Part shown: one piece after another, positions 109 to 30,418 of the stretch | Layout of the letters: each line of letters opens with the position of its first letter | How positions within the stretch are numbered: the first letter of the stretch is position 1 | Assembly (NCBI RefSeq): GCF_006345805.1 | Contig: NW_021832455.1 | Span: forward strand, 1 to 30,967 | DNA from: Octopus sinensis | Taxonomy: Eukaryota | Direction of reading: 5' to 3' | DNA length: 30,967 nucleotides | Program-made: the position numbers and the translations under genes | Notes under the pieces: model-generated | What the model was told of the DNA's origin: nothing | The model's input: the letters and a program-made list of their open reading frames with translations, nothing else | The model's database searches: none

Positions 109-313
109 CATGGTAAAGAATTACTAATTTAATAATTAATAACTTTTACCAAGTAGTAAAAACTTATACAAAAGTTTATATATATATATAATATATATAT
201 ATAATATATTTTGTATATTATATTAATTAATTTATTTATTTCTATGTTTTGGTTTATGTTTTTCACTGTTTGATTTGCCTAATAGTGGTTTTATCTCTAA
301 TTTAAATGGTAAA

Positions 314-633
314 GGACCCCTTCGGTCATGAGTGACCATGGGTTTACACCTAGAGAGTTACCCTCTGAGGCACAAGTCTGGGCAAGGTTGTTCTATGGAA
401 GACCATACCGGCCTCCCCTCTCCACGCCACCAGTGTTATCCAAGGGAAAGACAAAGGTCGATACAGCTTGGCACCTGTGACGTCGCAACTCATTTCTACA
501 GCTGAGTGAACTGGAGCAACGTGAAATAAAGTGTCTTGCTCAAGAACACAACACGCAGCCCGGTTCGGGATTCGAGCTCACAACCTCATGATCGTAAGCT
601 CGACGCTCTAACCACTGAGCCATGCGCCTTCAC
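314..633 (-). mobile_element. tRNA-derived SINE, CORE-like (family A)
   Basis: The minus strand begins GGCGCATGGCTCAGTGGTTAGAGCG (A box) ... GAGCTCGAATCC (B-box-like). It then reads CTTGAGCAAGACACTTTATTTCAC...CAGCTGTAGAAATGAG, resembling the CORE domain. A second copy lies at 20028-20359. Confidence 0.85.
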
Positions 634-737
634 TAATTTAATATATAATTTAATATATATATATTTATACTATAAAATTAGATTTAATCCTAAATCTAAT
701 TTTTCCCTGTAAGTTTGGTTTTACTCCTTAATATTAT

Positions 738-740
<3 letters not shown>

Positions 741-781
<41 letters not shown>

Positions 782-793
782 TATATATTATAT

Positions 794-831
<38 letters not shown>

Positions 832-832
832 A
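741..832. repeat. (TA)n microsatellite, left flank of the 495-bp array
   Basis: Direct dinucleotide repeat. Confidence 0.95.
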
Positions 833-1116
833 TGCAACCGTAACGGTTTTTTTTAAATATACTGCCCACGCTTCCTGATGAATTCCTTTGCTGTAGAGTA
901 AGGGACTTCATCCTATATTGCTTAGTAGTAACTCGATGCTTGCTGCAGGAGGACTGGTAACCATTACAATTTGTAGCGGCGAAAGGTCTGGACGTTGTTT
1001 TCTGAGGCTGACCAAAGAATTTTTATTTTTAGATATAAGTGATGTACTCAAGTGTAGTTATGTTTTTAGCTTGTGCTTTTTCCATGATCATACGTGAGTA
1101 TTTTATTTATATCCCA

Positions 1117-1194
1117 TCGAAAGTTCTACTGAAGAAGGAATATATCTTTTTTTATAAGATTAAGTCCGAAATTGATTCAATATAGAGATAACGA
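1117..1194 (+). ncRNA. Type I hammerhead ribozyme, copy 1 (predicted cleavage 1182/1183)
   Basis: Core: CTGAAGA 1129-1135 plus an extra A. Stem II: GGA/TCC with inner ATCTT/AAGAT. GAAA 1168-1171. Stem III: ATTG/CAAT. AUA triplet 1180-1182. Stem I: TTCTA/TAGAG, then an internal loop, then TCG/CGA. Confidence 0.85.
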
Positions 1195-1611
1195 AATTTA
1201 AATTTTCTAAAGGTTAGTTGCCCGTTTTCAGTTTCAATTTTCCTGTAACAAGCGGATTATAAGTGGATAAAACAGTGTATTTGGCTTTAGAATAACCCTC
1301 TTTAGCCCTTAATTATATGATGTATATTGCAACCGTAACGGTTTTTTTTAAATATACTGCCCACGCTTCCTGATGAATTCCTTTGCTGTAGAGTAAGGGA
1401 CTTCATCCTATATTGCTTAGTAGTAACTCGATGCTTGCTGCAGGAGGACTGGTAACCATTACAATTTGTAGCGGCGAAAGGTCTGGACGTTGTTTTCTGA
1501 GGCTGACCAAAGAATTTTTATTTTTAGATATAAGTGATGTACTCAAGTGTAGTTATGTTTTTAGCTTGTGCTTTTTCCATGATCATACGTGAGTATTTTA
1601 TTTATATCCCA

Positions 1612-1688
1612 TCGAAAGTTCTACTGAAGAAGGAATATATCTTTTTTTATAAGATTAAGTCCGAATTGATTCAATATAGAGATAACGA
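1612..1688 (+). ncRNA. Type I hammerhead ribozyme, copy 2 (GAAA reduced to GAA; inactive or a sequencing indel)
   Basis: Same fold as copy 1, with CTGAAGA at 1624-1630, but it reads CCGAATTG instead of CCGAAATTG. Confidence 0.7.
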
Positions 1689-2106
1689 AATTTAAATTTT
1701 CTAAAGGTTAGTTGCCCGTTTTCAGTTTCAATTTTCCTGTAACAAGCGGATTATAAGTGGATAAAACAGTGTATTTGGCTTTAGAATAACCCTCTTTAGC
1801 CCTTAATTATATGATGTATATTGCAACCGTAACGGTTTTTTTTAAATATACTGCCCACGCTTCCTGATGAATTCCTTTGCTGTAGAGTAAGGGACTTCAT
1901 CCTATATTGCTTAGTAGTAAACTCGATGCTTGCTGCAGGAGGACTGGTAACCATTACAATTTGTAGCGGCGAAAGGTCTGGACGTTGTTTTCTGAGGCTG
2001 ACCAAAGAATTTTTATTTTTAGATATAAGTGATGTACTCAAGTGTAGTTATGTTTTTAGCTTGTGCTTTTTCCATGATCATACGTGAGTATTTTATTTAT
2101 ATCCCA

Positions 2107-2184
2107 TCGAAAGTTCTACTGAAGAAGGAATATATCTTTTTTTATAAGATTAAGTCCGAAATTGATTCAATATAGAGATAACGA
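2107..2184 (+). ncRNA. Type I hammerhead ribozyme, copy 3 (predicted cleavage 2172/2173)
   Basis: Identical to copy 1; CTGAAGA at 2119-2125. Confidence 0.85.
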
Positions 2185-2601
2185 AATTTAAATTTTCTAA
2201 AGGTTAGTTGCCCGTTTTCAGTTTCAATTTTCCTGTAACAAGCGGATTATAAGTGGATAAAACAGTGTATTTGGCTTTAGAATAACCCTCTTTAGCCCTA
2301 ATTATATGATGTATATTGCAACCGTAACGGTTTTTTTTAAATATACTGCCCACGCTTCCTGATGAATTCCTTTGCTGTAGAGTAAGGGACTTCATCCTAT
2401 ATTGCTTAGTAGTAAACTCGATGCTTGCTGCAGGAGGACTGGTAACCATTACAATTTGTAGCGGCGAAAGGTCTGGACGTTGTTTTCTGAGGCTGACCAA
2501 AGAATTTTTATTTTTAGATATAAGTGATGTACTCAAGTGTAGTTATGTTTTTAGCTTGTGCTTTTTCCATGATCATACGTGAGTATTTTATTTATATCCC
2601 A

Positions 2602-2679
2602 TCGAAAGTTCTACTGAAGAAGGAATATATCTTTTTTTATAAGATTAAGTCCGAAATTGATTCAATATAGAGATAACGA
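2602..2679 (+). ncRNA. Type I hammerhead ribozyme, copy 4 (predicted cleavage 2667/2668)
   Basis: Identical to copy 1; CTGAAGA at 2614-2620. Confidence 0.85.
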
Positions 2680-3095
2680 AATTTAAATTTTCTAAAGGTT
2701 AGTTGCCCGTTTTCAGTTTCAATTTTCCTGTAACAAGCGGATTATAAGTGGATAAAACAGTGTATTTGGCTTAGAATAACCCTCTTTAGCCCTTAATATA
2801 TGATGTATATTGCAACCGTAACGGTTTTTTTTAAATATACTGCCCACGCTTCCTGATGAATTCCTTTGCTGTAGAGTAAGGGACTTCATCCTATATTGCT
2901 TAGTAGTAAACTCGATGCTTGCTGCAGGAGGACTGGTAACCATTACAATTTGTAGCGGCGAAAGGTCTGGACGTTGTTTTCTGAGGCTGACCAAAGAATT
3001 TTTATTTTTAGATATAAGTGATGTACTCAAGTGTAGTTATGTTTTTAGCTTGTGCTTTTTCCATGATCATACGTGAGTATTTTATTTATATCCCA

Positions 3096-3173
3096 TCGAA
3101 AGTTCTACTGAAGAAGGAATATATCTTTTTTTATAAGATTAAGTCCGAAATTGATTCAATATAGAGATAACGA
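3096..3173 (+). ncRNA. Type I hammerhead ribozyme, copy 5 (predicted cleavage 3161/3162)
   Basis: Identical to copy 1; CTGAAGA at 3108-3114. Confidence 0.85.
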
Positions 3174-3515
3174 AATTTAAATTTTCTAAAGGTTAGTTGC
3201 CCGTTTTCAGTTTCAATTTTCCTGTAACAAGCGGATTATAAGTGGATAAAACAGTGTATTTGGCTTTAGAATAACCCTCTTTAGCCCTTAATTATATGAT
3301 ATATATATATATATATATATATTGTTAATTTATATTTTTCACCGGAATAGTTCAATACTGAATTTTTATTCCGACTAGGCAATTTGTTACCGAAATGCAT
3401 TGCGAATAAGCCCGCCATTTTCATAGATATGTAAAGATAAACATTCGTACATGCTACGACGAATTCTACGGTTGGCTATCGAGCTTGTAATGTTATGTTT
3501 TCTCTTATATTTCTT

Positions 3516-3592
3516 GAGTTTGTTGCACTGATGAACATGAAATGCATATTCTGCATTAAATGCGAAATCACATGTGATATGTAACTGAATTC
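3516..3592 (+). ncRNA. Type I hammerhead ribozyme of a different family (predicted cleavage 3579/3580)
   Basis: CTGATGA 3528-3534. Stem II: CAT/ATG with inner AATGCA/TGCATT. GAAA 3564-3567. Palindromic stem III ATCACATGTGAT. AUA triplet. Stem I: GTTGCA/TGTAAC extended by GAGTT/AATTC. The 10.1:11.1 pair is A-C, which is non-canonical. Confidence 0.75.
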
Positions 3593-3712
3593 TCTTTTTT
3601 AAAATGATGTGTTTTGAAGTTTTGCATTCGGTAAAATTTTGTTTATTTTTAGTAGTTTTGACCGCATTGGTCCCTCTTAGCGTGTGGTATCTACGAATCG
3701 TAGTACCCTCAA

Positions 3713-3773
3713 TATAATAATAATAATAATAATAATAATATATATATATATATATATAATATATATATATATA
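3713..3773. repeat. (TAA)n/(TA)n microsatellite
   Basis: Direct repeats. Confidence 0.9.
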
Positions 3774-3779
3774 CTTAAA

Positions 3780-4030
3780 GCGTGAATGGATTTGATGGAC
3801 GGAATCTGAAAGGAACCCATTATATATTTGTGTATGTGTGTTAAGTTCTTGACCCCTCACCACAGCTTGACAACCGGTGTCGGTGTGTTTACACATCCGT
3901 AACTTTGTGGTTTGGGATAAGAGACCGATACAATGATACCAGGCTTAACAAATAAAATAACAAATACTGGATTCGATAAACTTGATTAAAATTCTCCAAA
4001 GTGGTGTCCAGCATGGCTGAAAAATAAAAG
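3780..4030 (+). mobile_element. Diverged partial SINE (family B, 3' portion)
   Basis: Recognisable blocks CTTGACAACCGGTGTCGGTGTGTTTAC, GAGACCGATA and CCAGCATGGC, which match the family B copies. Confidence 0.6.
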
Positions 4031-4035
4031 ATGAC

Positions 4036-4036
<1 letters not shown>

Positions 4037-4122
<86 letters not shown>
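4037..4122. repeat. (TA)n microsatellite
   Basis: Direct repeat. Confidence 0.95.
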
Positions 4123-5874: not shown

Positions 5875-6108
5875 TTGTGCACAAATTTTCCTTAAATTAT
5901 TCATGCTTGCTCCCTCTCGCCGTATGCTGTTTGCTAGTATCAAGTATACGTTGTCCACAAATATTCCTTAAATTATTCATGTTTGCTCCCTCTCGTTGTA
6001 TGCTGTTTGCTAGTATCAAGTATACGTTGTCCTTAAATTTTCCTTGAATTATTCATGTTTGCTCCCTCTCGTTGCATGCTGTTTGCTAGTATCAAGTATA
6101 TGTTGTCC
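5875..6108. repeat. 76-bp minisatellite, about 3 copies
   Basis: Unit starts at 5875, 5951, 6027 and 6103. Confidence 0.9.
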
Positions 6109-9441: not shown

Positions 9442-9458
9442 ATCATCACCATCATCAT

Positions 9459-9520
<62 letters not shown>

Positions 9521-9545
9521 TCACCACCACCACCATCATCATCAT

Positions 9546-9577
<32 letters not shown>

Positions 9578-9905
9578 CCACCACCACATCATCATCATCA
9601 TCATCTCATCATCATCACCATCATCACCATCATCATCATTATCATCATCATCACTATCATCATCACTATCATCATCACTATCATCATCACTATCACCATC
9701 ATCATCATCATCATCATATCATCATCACCACCACCACATCATCATCATCATCATCACCACCACCATCCATCATCATCATCATCATCACCACATCATCATC
9801 ATCATCATCATCACCATCACCATTATCATCATCATCATCATCAATCATCATCATCATCATCACCACCATCATCATCATCACCACCATCATCATCATCATC
9901 ATCAT

Positions 9906-9937
<32 letters not shown>

Positions 9938-9940
9938 TCA

Positions 9941-9972
<32 letters not shown>

Positions 9973-10001
9973 CCACATCATCATCATCATCATCATCATC
10001 A

Positions 10002-10033
<32 letters not shown>

Positions 10034-10120
10034 CCATCATAATCATCAACATCATCATCATCATCATCAATCATCATCATCATCACTATCACCATCATCA
10101 TCGTCATCATCATCATCATC
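9442..10120. repeat. Long compound (CAT/CAC)n trinucleotide tract
   Basis: About 680 bp of CAT triplets with interspersed CAC, CAA and TAT. Confidence 0.95.
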
Positions 10121-10597: not shown

Positions 10598-11199
10598 ATA
10601 CCTATTTCTTTACTACCCACAAGGGGCTAAACACAGAGGGGACAAACAAGGACAGACAAACGGATTAAGTCGATTATATCGACCCCAGTGCGTAACTGGT
10701 ACTTATTTAATCGACCCCGAAAGGATGAAAGGCAAAGTCGACCTCGGCAGAATTTGAACTCAGAACATATCAGCAGACGAAATACCTATTTCTTTACTAC
10801 CCACAAGGGGCTAAACACAGAGGGGACAAACAAGGACAGACAAACGGATTAAGTCGATTATATCGACCCCAGTGCGTAACTGGTACATATTTAATCGACC
10901 CCGAAAGGATGAAAGGCAAAGTCGACCTCGGCAGAATTTGAACTCAGAACATATCAGCAGACGAAATACCTATTTCTTTACTGCCCACAAGGGGCTAAAC
11001 ACAGAGGGAACAAATAAGGACAAACAAACGGATTAAGTCGATTACAACGACCCCAGTGTGTAACTGGTACTTATTTAATCGACCCCGAAAGGATGAAAGG
11101 CAAAGTCGACCTCGGCAGAATTTGAACTCAGAACATAGCAGCAGACGAAATACCTATTTCTTTACTGCCCACAAGAGGCTACACACAGAGGGAACAAAC
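10598..11199 (-). repeat. Head-to-tail tandem array of a 184-bp headless family C SINE unit (3 copies plus a partial)
   Basis: ATACCTATTTCTTTACT recurs at 10598, 10782, 10966 and 11150. The unit is the reverse complement of the family C body without the A-box head. Confidence 0.9.
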
Positions 11200-11544: not shown

Positions 11545-12081
11545 TTAAAAGTAAAGCTGTCCACTCTTCCAACTCTCTATGTACTTCCTCGTCTCCTCTT
11601 CTAGATCCTCCTCCATCTCAGGTATATCACCTTCTTCCAATTGCATCAACTCATGTACGTCCATATCTTCCAGTTTATCCTTCATCCATAAATCCAACTC
11701 CTGGTCCAGCTGCTCCTCCAGTGCCTCAGATTTCTTCACCTCTTCCACTTCCTGCTCCAACACTTCTTCATCTTTCCTAAATACATATATCGCCTTTACA
11801 AATGTTTTATTCTTTGCCAACTCATTCTTATCACAACCTTTGGTAGTTTCCTCTGCCACGGGGTTTTCGACAATATCCTTTGGTTGTTCGGTAATAAATA
11901 AATTTATGTTGCAAGGATAACGCTGAATAGGTGTATCTTTTGTAGAGATGGGATCCGACCCCACAACGTTTGGTCTGGCACTACGGAATAAGAATCTAGC
12001 AAAAGAACGTCTGACCCGAGAAATAAAGCGACCCAAGGGTCCTCTGCGAACTGGTGTGTCTGCCGGCGGCAATGGTGACAT
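11545..12081 (-). CDS. Orphan ORF, 178 aa from MSPLPPADTP; basic amphipathic N-region and acidic C-terminus; function unknown
   Basis: Long stop-free, non-microsatellite frame in AT-rich DNA. The ATG at 12081 has A at -3. Composition is protein-like. The upstream extension to 12222 is pyrimidine-rich and probably non-coding. No family recognised. Confidence 0.55.
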   Translation of the reverse strand: MSPLPPADTPVRRGPLGRFISRVRRSFARFLFRSARPNVVGSDPISTKDTPIQRYPCNINLFITEQPKDIVENPVAEETTKGCDKNELAKNKTFVKAIYVFRKDEEVLEQEVEEVKKSEALEEQLDQELDLWMKDKLEDMDVHELMQLEEGDIPEMEEDLEEETRKYIESWKSGQLYF

Positions 12082-12800
12082 TTCGGTTTGTTTAGATATA
12101 CAAAGACCAAAAAAGGTAAGAAAAACATAAACAAACACAAATGACAAGCAAATAAAGAAGAATGTAGGAAGGATGTGATAAACGATAAAAGGAAAGGAAC
12201 TATAGAATGATGAAGTTGTCAATTAATTAGTTCTGTTAATTAAAATGAGAGAAATATATGAATGAATACCAAACAAGAGATGAGAACAATTAAAAAGACA
12301 GGTAAACACAGAAAGAAAATAAGCAATTAGGAAGGAAGGAATAGAAAGATGTAACTGAGGGATACAAATTAAATGAAACAATTTTATGAATGAATGGAAG
12401 AAAGGGATTGGTAATCAAAAATTAATTATAGTTGTAAATATGCAAAGGAGGAAAGTAGGAAGGAAAAGATAGAAAGGGAAAGAGAAAATAGGAAGAAAGA
12501 GAGAGGAAGAAGGATAAATTGGCTTCAATGAAATAATTATATGAATGAATACAGAAGATGAAAGGGGAAATCAGCAATTAACGAAATTAAAAAAAGAAAG
12601 AAATCAGGAAGAAAGGTGGAAAGGGAGAAAAAAAGCGAACGAGTAAAATGAAGGAATTATCCGTAAAATTTATCAGTAAATTAATTAAAATGAGACAAAT
12701 TTAGATTTGAATCAGCAGATGAGTAAGTAAGGGATCAATCAAAGACACAAAGATAGGAAAGAAATATGAAAAAGGATGATAAACCGATAGATGAACGAAC

Positions 12801-17902: not shown

Positions 17903-18134
17903 AAGGCGGCGAGCTGGCAAAAACGTTAGCGCGCCAGGTGAAATGCGTAGCCGTATTTCGTCTGCCGTTACGTTCTGAGTTCAAATTCCGTCGATGTCGA
18001 CTTTGCCTTTCATCCTTTCGGGGTCGATAAATAAAGTACCCGTTTCGCACTGGGGTCGATGTAATAAACTTAAACCCTTTGTCTATTCTTGTTTGTCCCC
18101 TCTGTGTTTAACCCCTTGTGGGCAATAAAGAAAT
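17903..18134 (+). mobile_element. tRNA-derived SINE family C, full length
   Basis: Head GGCGGCGAGCTGGCA, B-box-like GAGTTCAAATTCC, central TTTGCCTTTCATCCTTTCGGGGTCGATAAAT..GTACC (reminiscent of the Meta domain) and tail AAAGAAAT. Confidence 0.85.
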
Positions 18135-18706
18135 ATATATATGTGGGTGTGCGTGTGTATGTCTCTGTCTGTGTCTGTTTGTACATATACAGTGAGTAGA
18201 TGAAAGCCACATAATCTTAGTGTATATATCTTAGTGTAGTACTCAAATGGATGAGAACTTGACTATATCCTCTTTATCCACGACCAGCTCTTCAGCATAG
18301 AGAGTTACCTGGAAGTGTAATCGTTATCGAACTGTTATGGAGATAGCAAGGTAGATAAATACATTTAAGCTTGGAACACACAAAATACAGAATACAAAAT
18401 GAAGTGGAACGAAACAAACTAAATAGAAGAATTATATAAAGCCTTCTCTCGACAGTTGTTTCAAGACAGCCATAACTTGAATAATATCCAGGGCACACAA
18501 ATGAAACGAACTCTCGTCTGCTACCTCTGGAGGTATGAAGATCATGAGTGAGTTTGCGGTGAAGGTCAATATATATTTTATTATTTGTATTTTGGAATCC
18601 AAGTAAACACAATGTCTCAAGTCTAACCGTGTATACCTAGCTTACTACCTACCTACCTATCTACCTACCGACACACATACCTACCTCCCTGCCAACCTAC
18701 CATATG

Positions 18707-26281: not shown

Positions 26282-26519
26282 CAGAAGGTGGCGAGCTGGC
26301 AGAATCGGTAGCACGCCGGGCGAAATGCTTAGCGGTATTTCATCTGCCGTTACGTTCTGAGTTCAAATTCTGCCGAGGTTGACTTTGCCTTTCATCCTTT
26401 TAGGGTTGATAAAAATTAAGTACCAGTTATGCACTGGGGTCGATATAATCGACTTAACCCCTTTGCCTGTCCTTGTTTGTCCCCTCTGTGTTTAGCTCTT
26501 TGTAGGCAATAAAGAAATA
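26282..26519 (+). mobile_element. SINE family C, full length, 15-bp TSD
   Basis: Exact TSD AGAAAGATCACCCTC at 26267-26281 and 26520-26534. Confidence 0.9.
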
Positions 26520-26728: not shown

Positions 26729-26965
26729 TATATTTCTTTACTGCCCACAAGGGGCTAAACACAGAGAGTACAAACAAGGACAGACAAACGGATTAAGTCG
26801 TTTATATCAACCGCAGTGCATAACTGGTACATATTTAATCGACCCTGAAAGGATGAAAGGCAACGTCGACCTCGGCGGAATTTGAACTCACAACGTAACG
26901 GCAGACGAATATACCGCTAAGCATTTCGCCCAGCGTGCTAACGATTCTGCCAGCTCGCCGCCTTC
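26729..26965 (-). mobile_element. SINE family C, full length, 15-bp TSD
   Basis: Exact TSD CGGAAGGAGATAATA at 26714-26728 and 26966-26980. Confidence 0.9.
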
Positions 26966-27520: not shown

Positions 27521-30418
27521 TGAAGATGAGAAAACAGATGGGAGAGAAGGGTTTACGCATCCAAGATGGACAAATAATCAAGTCCTACCTCTGGTCGCAT
27601 GCTGTAGTGCTGACAGGGAAAGTGAATTGAGGGCAAATCGAAGTAAAGTAGATACCCCCGTCAACGATGCTATCTCTGATACCCCTTATTCTGCTGGTTC
27701 CCCAACTCCTGCTCCTCAAACTTCACAGCTCAGCATCGTCTATACTAACTCGTGCTCCTTATTTCCAAAGTTCAGCGAACTATTTACACTGGCCATGCGT
27801 GACTCCCCTGATGTGATAGCTATCACCGAGACTTGGCTGACTCCAGCAGTAAAGGACTCAGAAATCCACCTACAGGGCTACGTCCTCTTCAGATGTGACA
27901 GAGAAAAAAGGCGAGGTGGAGGTGTTGTTGTATATGTTAAATCTGATCTCAAACCGTCCAGCGGTATTCTACCCACTAATGCTCAACCTACAACAAAATT
28001 CGATGCCGTCTATTGCAAGCTGAGCCTATCCGAGTTTTGCCTGCCCGTGTTAGCTGTCTACAGGCCGCCTCTTGCCGACCCCCAGGACGATGCTCATTTA
28101 CTCAAAGCGATAAGATTCGTTTCAGCTTCTCATGACTGTTTGATATTAGGAGACTTCAACGCTCCCACGATTGATTGGCCCGCATCAATTTGTACATCGT
28201 CTTCCCGGTTCGGCCAGGCCTTTCTTGACGTGGCTGAAAATTGTTTTCTATCGCAACATGTTGAATATCCGACAAGGCATCGGTCTGGGCATCAGCCATC
28301 TATGCTGGATCTGTTATTCTCCCGCTATCCAAGATCAGTGTCAGACGTATCTCTGTGCGCCCCTCTTGCCAAGACTGATCATGCGGTCCTGAAGTTCGTC
28401 ATGCACACAACTTTTTCTGCGCCCACGACTACTTCGCTGCCACGTAGAGTCTTCTCTGCAATTAATCTTGAAATTCTAACCGAGGCTTCCGCGCTTCTGG
28501 ACTGGCGATCCCTGATGACGTTGTCCTCAGTTGACGAACTATGGTCATCCCTCAAAGCATATGTAATCTGGTTGACTGACCAGGCAGTTCCTGTTGGGCT
28601 TCCCAAGAAGAAGAAACACAAGCCCTGGGTGACGAAGAAGGTTAAACGAGAACTTCGACTCAGAGATATTGCTTGGGCTGAATTCAAAAATCTGGATTCG
28701 ACTGCAGCTTTTGAGGTGTACAAAACTCAACGAGGTCGAGCCGTGAAAATTGAACAGGAAGAACGCTTCAGTTATGAATACAAAATCGCGGCAAACGCCA
28801 GTAGCAATCCAAAAACCTTCTTTGCCCATGTCCAACGGAATTCCCGCTTGAACAACCAAATTGCAACGTTGGTAGACTCAATAGGCGTATCGATTGAGGA
28901 CCCTTATCAACAGAGTCAATTATTTGCTGAGGCTTTTTCAACTATTTTCAAACAAGATGATGGTCGTGAACCCCCTCCATTTGATAGATCGGTACCTCCA
29001 ATGCTTCGATTGGTCATCACGCGGGATGAAGTCAAACGTGTTATTCAAGGCCTCGATGTCAAGAAGGGTCACGGCCCTGACGGCATACACCCACGGGTTA
29101 TCAAAGCGTTGGCTCCGGTCATCTGCGAGCCCTTAACATGTCTATTCAATATGTCATTGGCGACGGGTGTTATACCTGCGGACTGGAGAACAGCGATAAT
29201 CTGCTCAATTTTCAAGAAAGGGAGCCGCGAAGACCCGCTTAACTACCGACCGGTTTCCCTTACATCAATAATCAGCAAGATGTTCGAAACCATCCTTAAG
29301 AAAAGTATGATGCTCCACCTCCAAAACACAGCCTCTATCTCTGATTACCAACACGGCTTCGTGCCGAAGAGATCATGCTTGACCAACTTACTGGTAATGG
29401 AAGAATTGGTGATGCGCATCCTCGATGAGAGTGATGCTGTTGACATCGTTTTATTGGACTTTGCCAAAGCTTTTGACTCAGTAAACCACCGCCTATTACT
29501 TGTCAAGCTTCAAGCATATAGTTTTCATCCGGATATTGTACGATGGGTTGGTGCCTTCCTCTCAGATCGCTCCTTCCAAGTCAAGTTAATGGTTCGCGGT
29601 CCGACATATCCAGTGCGAGCAGTGGCGTGCCTCAAGGTTCAGAGCATGGGCCCTTATTGTTCTTAGTCTTCATAAATGACTTGCCCGACGACCTTACGCA
29701 ACACACCCTTCTATTTGCCGACGATGTCAAACTGGTCGCTCCTCGCGGTGATATAGAGGATCTTCGTCGATGCCTCCACCAAATTTGGAGGTGGTCTGAC
29801 GAATGGGACCTGTGTCTGAACGTGTCAAAGTGCTGTCATCTGCCTGTTGGCTCTCCTCCTGCAACTCAACTTGATTTTGAGCCGGGTCGTCTGCTGCTGG
29901 AGAGGACCGATCAGGTAAAGGACCTGGGTATCTTCGTGGATTCCTCCTTTTCGCCTTCGGCCCAGTGCGTCCGTGCTGCCAACAAAGCACGCGGAATTCT
30001 GTTCTTGATTCGACGGTCATTCGGAATGCTCACAGCAGCCATATTCCTACCGCTCTATGTCACGCTGGTGAGACCCATATTGGAGTACGGGATTCAAGCC
30101 TCTTCTCCTTATCTCCTCAAAGATATACAGCATCTCGAAAGAGTCCAGAAGCTGGCTACCCGCATGGTTCATGGTCTCAAGCATTTGTCTTATGAAGAAA
30201 GGCTGAAGACGCTCGACCTTTATTCTCTAGAAAAACGATGACGCCGTGGTGATCTCATTCTTGCTCACAACATCATAAGCGGAAAGTGTAACCTCTCGAA
30301 AGAGCTGTTCTTCACTCCTGCTCCAGAGCATCGGCTGCGGGGTCACTCCAAAAAGCTCTACCTGCGACGATTTCATCTCAATCGAAGGAGAGGAGCTTTC
30401 TCCGTCCGGGTTGCGGAT
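27520..30418 (+). mobile_element. CR1-clade LINE segment (end of ORF1 plus nearly all of ORF2), lacking both natural ends
   Basis: ORF1-like C-terminus LKMRKQMGEKGLRIQDGQII ending at TGA 27628-27630. APE endonuclease motifs ITETWL, GDFNAP and TDH. RT motifs NYRPVSLTS, QHGF, LDFAKAFD, GVPQGS and LFADD. Confidence 0.95.
27627..30418 (+). pseudogene. LINE ORF2 (endonuclease + reverse transcriptase) with one frameshift and one premature stop
   Basis: There is a -1 frameshift at 29583-29584 (AA where VKVNGS needs AAA) and a TGA at 30239-30241 within KR*RRGDLI. The frame continues to ...GAFSVRVAD at 30418. Confidence 0.9.

Follow-up and report, generated by a model that had tools for sequence, protein, structure and literature searches.

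A probable hammerhead retrozyme inserted as a pentamer into a (TA)n microsatellite of Octopus sinensis

We analyzed a 30,967-nucleotide (nt) stretch of the Octopus sinensis genome (RefSeq assembly GCF_006345805.1, contig NW_021832455.1, positions 1 to 30,967 of the forward strand; here called the window) that carries, at 833-3305 on the plus strand, a pentameric head-to-tail array of a 495-bp noncoding element with a type I hammerhead ribozyme (HHR). We estimate the probability at about three in four (0.74) that this unit is a nonautonomous, noncoding metazoan retrozyme of the kind that lacks long terminal repeats (non-LTR retrozyme), that its type I HHR has the architecture found in Penelope-like elements (PLEs), and that the pentamer is an insertion specific to this lineage, made in a (TA)n microsatellite and copied from circular or multimeric RNA. 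An initial annotation of the window, made from its letters alone, had proposed a retrozyme at this place. The proposal is now supported by the structural features through which such elements are recognized (PMC7229834; bioRxiv 10.64898/2026.07.22.740005), by covariation of the ribozyme helices among relatives, and by an empty site in Octopus vulgaris.

The tandem structure was borne out by Tandem Repeats Finder, which reported a period of 495, 5.0 copies, 99% matches, and a score of 4904 at 820-3306. Unit alignment places the five copies at 833-1327, 1328-1821, 1822-2316, 2317-2810, and 2811-3305, all on the plus strand, with lengths of 495, 494, 495, 494, and 495 bp and a GC content of 34%. 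The units are ~99% identical to one another and vary only by six 1-nt insertions or deletions, five within homopolymer runs and the sixth within TA-rich sequence, together with one substitution at the end of the array. One length variant, at alignment column 98, is common to the adjacent units 1 and 2 and is different in units 3 to 5. No internal direct repeats were found within the 495-bp unit, and neither blastn nor nhmmer found a match to it in the remainder of the window. The family extends beyond the span first annotated, 833-3300, with an older solo relative directly downstream at 3323-3711.

The unit has no convincing coding capacity, as had been claimed. The longest open reading frames (ORFs) in the array encode 59 amino acids (aa) on the plus strand and 110 aa on the minus strand; the 110-aa frame crosses unit borders, and no ORF within a unit exceeds 59 aa. 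For the 110-aa frame there was neither a homologue among 5.8 billion proteins nor an exactly matching contig on record. When viral, metagenome, and prokaryote-genome DNA collections were scanned for exact patterns from both HHR and non-HHR parts of the unit, 0 matches were returned. The plus strand of the element contains runs of T7 and T8, and AATAAA is absent from it. Other element types were considered and rejected. The ends read TGCAACC... and ...TTATATGAT rather than TC...CTRR, which by inspection rules out a Helitron. A terminal inverted repeat, expected of the corresponding class of transposons, was seen neither at the ends (by inspection) nor within a unit. A tRNA-like or RNA polymerase III (Pol III) element was also discarded, no tRNA being found and the sense strand having 11 runs of T4 or longer.

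The HHR domain of unit 1, at 1117-1194, was delineated by descriptor search, folding, and covariation. Its helix I is formed by TTCTA (1124-1128) and TAGAG (1183-1187) and is extended distally, past an AAAG/ATAA internal loop, by TCG (1117-1119) paired with CGA (1192-1194). The core sequence CTGAAGA (1129-1135) is followed by an extra nucleotide, A1136, after A9. Helix II (1137-1167) is composed of GGA/TCC, a 4x4 internal loop, ATCTT/AAGAT, and the 7-nt loop TTTTTAT, giving 12 stacked positions in which G1137-C1167 is the G10.1-C11.1 pair. It leads into GAAA (1168-1171), helix III with its loop, ATTG-ATT-CAAT (1171-1181), and A1182 as H17. The helices, of 5/3(+5)/4 bp, surround the core in register; loops close helices II and III, and helix I is open-ended. 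The helix III/loop sequence, ATTGATTCAAT, is palindromic at 10 of 11 positions.

When a type I HHR descriptor was applied to both strands of the whole window, it matched solely in units 1, 3, 4, and 5. The domains of the latter three, at 2107-2184, 2602-2679, and 3096-3173, were also placed by a covariance model built from the array alone (R2). A complete type I motif is thus present in four of the five units, with the invariant core (in unit 1, CUGAAGA, GAAA, A1171-U1181, and A1182) intact in each. The predicted cleavage sites, after A1182, A2172, A2667, and A3161, agree with those first annotated, as do the predicted monomers of 494-496 nt. The accompanying statement that every unit carries the motif held for these four, where helices and core are in register as described, and failed for unit 2. 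There the domain (1612-1688, with the equivalent site after 1676) has GAA in place of GAAA at unit alignment column 338. Judging from the sequence, unit 2 has either suffered an inactivating deletion, in which case its ribozyme is predicted to be inactive, or been affected by a homopolymer assembly error.

Motifs of this kind are rare by chance. A relaxed descriptor matched 7 to 9 times per 30 Mb of first-order Markov sequence of window-like composition, which corresponds to an expectation of ~0.015-0.019 per window and 2-3e-4 per unit (both strands), and there were 0 matches with the observed helix lengths in 60 Mb of such sequence. A generalized descriptor, in which position 10.1/11.1 could be bulged or mismatched and helix III could be as short as 2 bp, was applied to 95 kb of octopus DNA (190 kb counting both strands) and found three independent loci and no others, where ~0.08 would be expected.

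The other two loci were characterized with the help of an O. vulgaris segment (GCA_951406725.2, OX597842.1:21701175-21765489; coordinates within it are prefixed L001). An nhmmer search with the 495-bp unit gave one diverged match of ~65% identity, at L001 57688-57538 on the minus strand, spanning the HHR. The core of this relative reads CTGATGA...GAAA...T-C. Relative to the array, TATCG/CGATA replaces TTCTA/TAGAG in helix I, GAG/CTC replaces GGA/TCC in proximal helix II, and AATTC/GAATT replaces ATCTT/AAGAT in distal helix II. Model R2 scores L001 57591-57508 at 31.8 bits (E = 8e-5), and its next matches are L001 18283-18195 (20.1 bits) and the orthologue of that site, window 3512-3598 (18.5 bits).

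The latter match falls within the solo monomer at 3323-3711 (plus strand), an older copy of a related HHR element that was identified by R2, the descriptor, and the comparison with O. vulgaris. Its HHR, at 3522-3585 with a predicted cut after A3579, was located by R2, by the descriptor, and by a second covariance model (R1) that is unrelated to R2, being built from four retrozyme HHRs whose cleavage Cervera & de la Peña demonstrated in vitro (one from coral, one from mussel, and two from axolotl; Nucleic Acids Research [NAR] 2020 supplement). R1 ranks the solo monomer site at the top (16.3 bits, E ~0.01). Its parse is wrong in that the first GAAA is used; the second GAAA gives a complete HHR. 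In that parse helix I is GTTGCA/TGTAAC, CTGATGA lies at 3528-3534, an A3535.C3563 mismatch precedes a helix II of CAT/ATG, a 2x2 loop, AATGCA/TGCATT, and a 5-nt loop, and GAAA lies at 3564-3567. Helix III with its loop, ATCACATGTGAT, is a perfect palindrome (12/12). The helix lengths of 6/3/4 had 0 chance matches in 40 Mb.

Because global MAFFT alignments placed the cores of the relatives out of register, a model-based alignment was used to examine covariation among the three lineages. In this alignment 99% of the cells are paired, 14 of the 20 pairs have changed on both sides, and the covariation score is 0.81 versus 0.32 in shuffles, a value reached by 0 of 500. When the 3' partners were slid by 1 to 3 columns as a control, pairing fell to 24-46% with 0 to 2 double changes. 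RNAalifold, run on the same alignment, recovered helices I and II de novo. The catalytic core is intact both in the solo monomer and in the direct copy at the diverged O. vulgaris locus. Such an invariant core surrounded by diverged, complementary helices is, at the level of sequence, the classical signature of a functional hammerhead. The initial annotation had listed beforehand, as the third of its refuting observations, a lack of conservation of core and helices in other copies relative to the rest of the unit; what was found is covariation in two relatives.

All three elements share a layout in which the HHR is followed by a conserved CCCT 124-133 nt after the cleavage site, an AT-rich stretch, and a TA-type microsatellite. 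The diverged O. vulgaris relative, whose locus lies ~39 kb beyond the window start, consists of a direct copy and an inverted, 5'-truncated copy, with arms at L001 57365-57581 and 57743-57961 that are 85-92% complementary. In the inverted copy the core G5 is changed to A, and a (TA)41 tract marks the end of the direct copy. No reverse transcriptase (RT) or endonuclease ORF was found beside any of the copies.

A number of results weigh against the interpretation of the array as a retrozyme. The Infernal search that the initial annotation had suggested was negative: no Rfam 15 hammerhead was found at the gathering score in the whole window, nor at E<=10 on 801 nt or 101 nt. R1 gives the array motif only 2.5 bits, with a wrong alignment. 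Both misses are probably caused by the 31-nt helix II and the extra nucleotide. The helices of the array HHR are AU-rich, the local 116-nt fold is no more stable than shuffles, and helix III attains a thermodynamic-ensemble probability of only ~3%, its 3' strand being able to pair instead with the CUGA box; natural viroid hammerheads are described as having a comparable competitor, in which the CUGAU box pairs with the trinucleotide preceding the cleavage site (PMC1636495). Furthermore, the catalytic core is broken in one unit (unit 2), no PLE ORF was found in the window or beside the relatives, and the covariation derives from three lineages in an alignment fitted by a model that was itself derived from the proposed structure. 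On the Rfam, R1, and folding tests alone, the motif would stay an attractive pattern match.

Other folding results favor the retrozyme interpretation. Helices I and II of unit 1 have pairing probabilities of 0.65-0.74 and were recovered by both minimum-free-energy (MFE) and ensemble predictions. The plus-strand monomer as a whole folds with z = -4.38 when linear and z = -4.86 when circular relative to shuffles, versus -0.91 and -1.17 for the minus strand; the circular plus-strand monomer reaches -126.3 kcal/mol with 63% of its positions paired, and 0 of 100 shuffles were as stable.

A mundane explanation for the array could be an ordinary minisatellite or segmental tandem duplication in which a chance hammerhead-like match was picked out by eye. 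The missing covariance-model match, the weak AU-rich helices, and the unexceptional local fold are what this explanation would lead one to expect, and five near-identical units provide no comparative information when the array is taken alone. It does not sit well with the low expectation per unit, with three independent loci in 95 kb, with compensatory change in helices I and II around an invariant core, with an RNA-structure excess that is strand specific, or with the lack of any unit at the orthologous O. vulgaris site described below. The chance explanation is thus strongly disfavored, and we regard it as very improbable.

Rfam searches returned a few matches to other RNA families. At 1144-1188 (plus strand) the stretch from helix II to helix III weakly resembles the 5' part of U6 small nuclear RNA, with AUAGAGA opposite the ACAGAGA box; the match scores 14.8 bits (gathering score, 44), with E = 0.11 on 101 nt, and we attribute it to chance. 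Matches to snoR24 and to a plastid intron were weak and spurious.

Evidence for insertion comes from the comparison with O. vulgaris, whose L001 segment is collinear with the window at 94-97% nucleotide identity. Window 528-814 corresponds to L001 18761-18473 and window 3293-4071 to L001 18501-17693, and the two blocks overlap in one uninterrupted (TA)n tract. The whole 2.47-kb pentamer is absent at this orthologous site, and the joined window flanks match the O. vulgaris site base for base, the length of the TA tract aside. In the window the (TA)n target is split into an upstream part at 741-832, where Tandem Repeats Finder reports (TA)47 at 741-831, and a downstream part at 3306-3322, placed by the same program and by the empty-site alignment. 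An older paralogue in L001 (~38.9-38.6 kb, ~93% identical) has (TA)n only at the position of the array. Since orthologue and paralogue both have a bare (TA)n, parsimony favors insertion of the pentamer in the lineage of the window, in keeping with the ~99% identity of the units inside flanks that have diverged by 3-6%.

The solo monomer offers a second filled/empty comparison. The O. vulgaris orthologue has it, whereas in the paralogue it is missing and left flank, (TA)n, and right flank follow one another; both insertions used the same microsatellite, the solo monomer having itself split this (TA)n tract. At its 3' end lies an (ATA)n(AT)n microsatellite (3712-3773, from Tandem Repeats Finder and the sequence). 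Mobility of the family is thus indicated by the empty orthologous site, by the solo relative missing in the paralogue, and by a third locus, that of the diverged relative at L001 57.4-57.96 kb.

The paralogue belongs to an O. vulgaris segmental duplication (L001 ~15.7-19.2 kb versus ~36.3-39.3 kb) in which the paralogous copy is ~93% and the orthologous copy ~97% identical to the window; the older paralogous copy serves as outgroup for both HHR-element insertions. The same comparison resolves a tRNA-derived short interspersed nuclear element (SINE) at window ~311-635 (minus strand), the reverse complement of which starts GTGAAGGCGCATGGCTCAGTGGTTAGAGCG... and in which ARAGORN calls no tRNA. This SINE is in the O. 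vulgaris orthologue and not in the paralogue, whose flanks join at CTAATTTAA, a sequence that looks like a target-site duplication.

The insertion could have involved a genuine HHR element and the array could nevertheless have been made at the DNA level, either by insertion of a monomer followed by unequal crossing-over or slippage, or by reintegration of a rolling-circle DNA circle via TA microhomology. Both ends of the array are TA-rich and could support microhomology-mediated joining, neither a poly(A) tail nor a discernible target-site duplication was found at the array, and solo monomers of the family exist. Moreover, the length variant shared by units 1 and 2 versus units 3 to 5 is not predicted by a single pass round one circle and mildly favors some post-insertion events or a multimeric template. 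However, the array comprises an integral 5.0 units with sharp ends, and its flanks contain no degenerate partial units above shuffle level. With units ~99% identical in flanks that are 3-6% diverged from O. vulgaris, any amplification in situ would need to have happened very recently. If a sequence already resident between two TA tracts had been amplified, the orthologue should carry one unit or more; it carries none, so the array did not arise by duplicating resident sequence. Head-to-tail multimers are, in addition, the usual insertion product of retrozymes and PLEs (PMC7229834, PMC8557442, PMC4209133). We consider an origin at the DNA level unlikely.

Interpreted as an RNA-templated insertion, the array belongs to a known kind, that of non-LTR retrozymes and PLE-type HHRs, and is not a new kind of system. 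Like described non-LTR retrozymes (PMC7229834), it is noncoding, has no long terminal repeat, primer-binding site, or polypurine tract, and has a GC content below 50%. The octopus family also resembles them in the predicted self-pairing of the monomer RNA and in the occurrence of multimers along with solo monomers. PLEs are found in the same genomes as retrozymes, and likewise here according to the report on O. vulgaris repeats, which counts 31 recently active PLE families (PMC13282606); ribozymes and retrozymes are unmentioned in that detailed annotation, and we found no description of hammerhead retrozymes in cephalopods in the literature.

A 2026 preprint (Li, Clavereau & Pollet 2026, bioRxiv 10.64898/2026.07.22.740005) defines retrozymes by head-to-tail units of ~50-1000 bp, two or more consecutive units that each hold a complete type I HHR, and an HHR MFE below -5 kcal/mol. 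The array has 5.0 units of 495 bp, complete HHRs in the consecutive units 3 to 5, and HHR MFE values of -8.5 to -11.5 kcal/mol, on the assumption that the rnabob descriptors of that study accept the extra A. The same preprint reports consensus lengths of 51-972 bp and seven or fewer units in 75% of families, and both the five units and the 495 bp fall within these ordinary ranges. The earlier impression that the unit is longer than most retrozyme monomers was accordingly not upheld.

The HHR itself points toward PLEs. The initial annotation had stated, correctly, that type I hammerheads with an extra nucleotide after CUGANGA occur in PLEs (Cervera & de la Peña 2014, PMC4209133), and the array HHR shares with them the unpaired nucleotide between A9 and G10.1 as well as the G10.1-C11.1 pair. 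As in PLEs, helix I of the octopus HHRs is short (5-6 bp), helix II is long, and helix III with loop 3 is palindromic; the 2014 study lists such features as ones that emerged in PLE hammerheads in addition to those of its descriptor. PLE insertions typically place an inverted truncated copy next to a direct copy and show a (TA)n bias (PMC8557442); the direct and inverted 5'-truncated copies of the diverged relative, and the insertion into (TA)n, are PLE-like in the same way. There are also differences. The array has a real 4-bp helix III, whereas the minimal HHRs of PLEs have 0-1 bp, and an internal loop divides its helix II, unlike theirs, into segments of 3 bp and 5-6 bp. The copies in the array, in contrast to PLEs, form a pure tandem of a short unit with no RT or GIY-YIG ORF between or beside them. 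PLE hammerheads are located in pseudo-LTRs that flank an ORF for RT and GIY-YIG, and since no such ORF is present here, the array is not an autonomous PLE. Coral and mussel retrozyme HHRs differ from that of the array in having the canonical form, with a 6-bp helix I and a 4-bp helix II with loop-loop contacts.

Each deviation of the octopus HHRs has a natural, catalytically active precedent. CChMVd(+) has an extra A10, ELVd(+) has an AUA triplet, and the long helix II of sCYDV-RPV(+) is interrupted (PMC3705267, PMC1636495), and the validated HHR of the axolotl retrozyme Ax353 has a U.U mismatch at 10.1/11.1 (NAR 2020 supplement). The first three are type III HHRs of replicating plant RNAs, whereas the array is a repeat in animal genomic DNA. 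Among animal repeats it can be set beside other tandem sequences with hammerheads. The classical HHR satellites, newt satellite 2 and Schistosoma Sm-alpha (both cited in PMC4209133) and cave-cricket pDo500 (~500 bp), give rise to self-cleaving monomer RNAs. The unit size of pDo500 is like that of the array; these satellites form long arrays, whereas the octopus array is short, of dispersed type, and located inside a microsatellite.

The HHR-bearing retroelement might have been mobilized not by a PLE but by a TA/TAA-specific long interspersed nuclear element (LINE) of the Dong/R4 group or by some other LINE. Dong-R4 elements, with 1129 insertions, outnumber every other recently active LINE group of O. 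vulgaris (PMC13282606), Bombyx Dong is located in TAA repeats (PMC3774820), the solo monomer terminates in (ATA)9 followed by (AT)n, and the window itself contains a CR1-like LINE. Yet Dong, R4, and R2 carry ribozymes like that of hepatitis delta virus at their 5' ends, not hammerheads (PMC3774820). In its nucleotide between 9 and 10.1, its long helix II, and its palindromic helix III, the HHR resembles those of PLEs specifically. The pairing of an inverted truncated copy with a direct copy is likewise specifically PLE-like, and PLEs too are biased to (TA)n. Mobilization by a LINE appears to us quite unlikely.

Drawing on published retrozyme and PLE work, we infer how a retrozyme of this kind would be expressed and mobilized. 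The plus strand would be transcribed as a multimer, likely by RNA polymerase II, because the T7 and T8 runs would terminate Pol III. The array lies antisense inside a predicted 44-kb intron of a low-confidence gene model, so that transcripts of the host gene would not carry the ribozyme sense strand. Each HHR would cut between A17 and U1.1 to release the 494-496-nt monomers with 5'-OH and 2',3'-cyclic phosphate ends, and if unit 2 is truly dead, a 990-nt dimer would appear among the cleavage products. Read-through transcripts would also be cut after A3579 in the solo monomer, and the stretch from the final HHR of the array to that of the solo monomer would be released as a 418-nt chimeric piece. 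A host enzyme of the tRNA-ligase type would circularize the monomers. An RT/endonuclease supplied in trans, most likely by a recently active octopus PLE, would then nick (TA)n and copy the circular or multimeric RNA for more than one round, generating a head-to-tail array. The array borders fall in the unit's own TA-rich TATATGATGTATAT segment, ~146 nt 3' of the cleavage site, which argues that the template would not have been a linear HHR-cut monomer; a circle or multimer joined to the target through TA microhomology would be the probable template.

The remainder of the window contains further repeats and one possible exon. The gene model just mentioned extends over L001 10001-54315, spans 44 kb, and looks weak; it includes an exon-like ORF at window 11545-12222 (minus strand) that is 96% identical to a 180-aa O. 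vulgaris "hypothetical predicted protein" and has no Pfam domain. The CR1-like LINE (APE and RT domains) at 27627-30241 (plus strand) has an ORF that is frameshifted near 29.5-29.7 kb and contains the sole RT in the window. Its best database relative is 48% identical and comes from outside the octopuses; the element is a LINE, not a PLE. A 76-bp minisatellite at 5875-6108 has 3.1 copies, with ~3 in the orthologous O. vulgaris segment and ~60 in the paralogous one (L001 ~31.6-36.6 kb). A 184-bp unit of SINE-type appearance occurs in 3.3 tandem copies with 96% matches at 10598-11199 and has relatives, in both orientations, at L001 3.9-4.1 kb and 10.7-11.1 kb and at window 17953-18135, 26290-26519, and 26731-26915. 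Finally, an (ATC)n microsatellite at 9442-10120 (228 repeats, 87% purity) yields spurious ORFs of 230-270 aa rich in His, Ser, and Ile.

To our knowledge, animal retrozymes are known mainly by their abundance and their circular RNAs, and direct evidence of a multimer moving as a unit is scarce. The clean filled/empty site between close Octopus species, together with an older relative in the same microsatellite, shows a recent insertion and targeting of (TA)n. We suggest tentatively, as a possibility that falls somewhat short of even odds, that cephalopods harbor a retrozyme family that is currently or was very recently active, with an HHR invisible to standard covariance models, whose members target the (TA)n tracts at one another's ends, turning microsatellites into nests of insertions made one after another. 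If this is true, the filled/empty Octopus pair would be a dated natural example of a whole multimer inserted in one event, and the rolling-circle retrotransposition model for animal retrozymes would become directly testable. PLE-like HHRs escape Rfam-based annotation, and with three loci in 95 kb, such elements may be numerous in octopus genomes, where they would now be filed as unknown or tandem repeats or as unclassified SINEs. If expressed, the element would be a source of abundant ~495-nt circular RNAs in cephalopod tissues.

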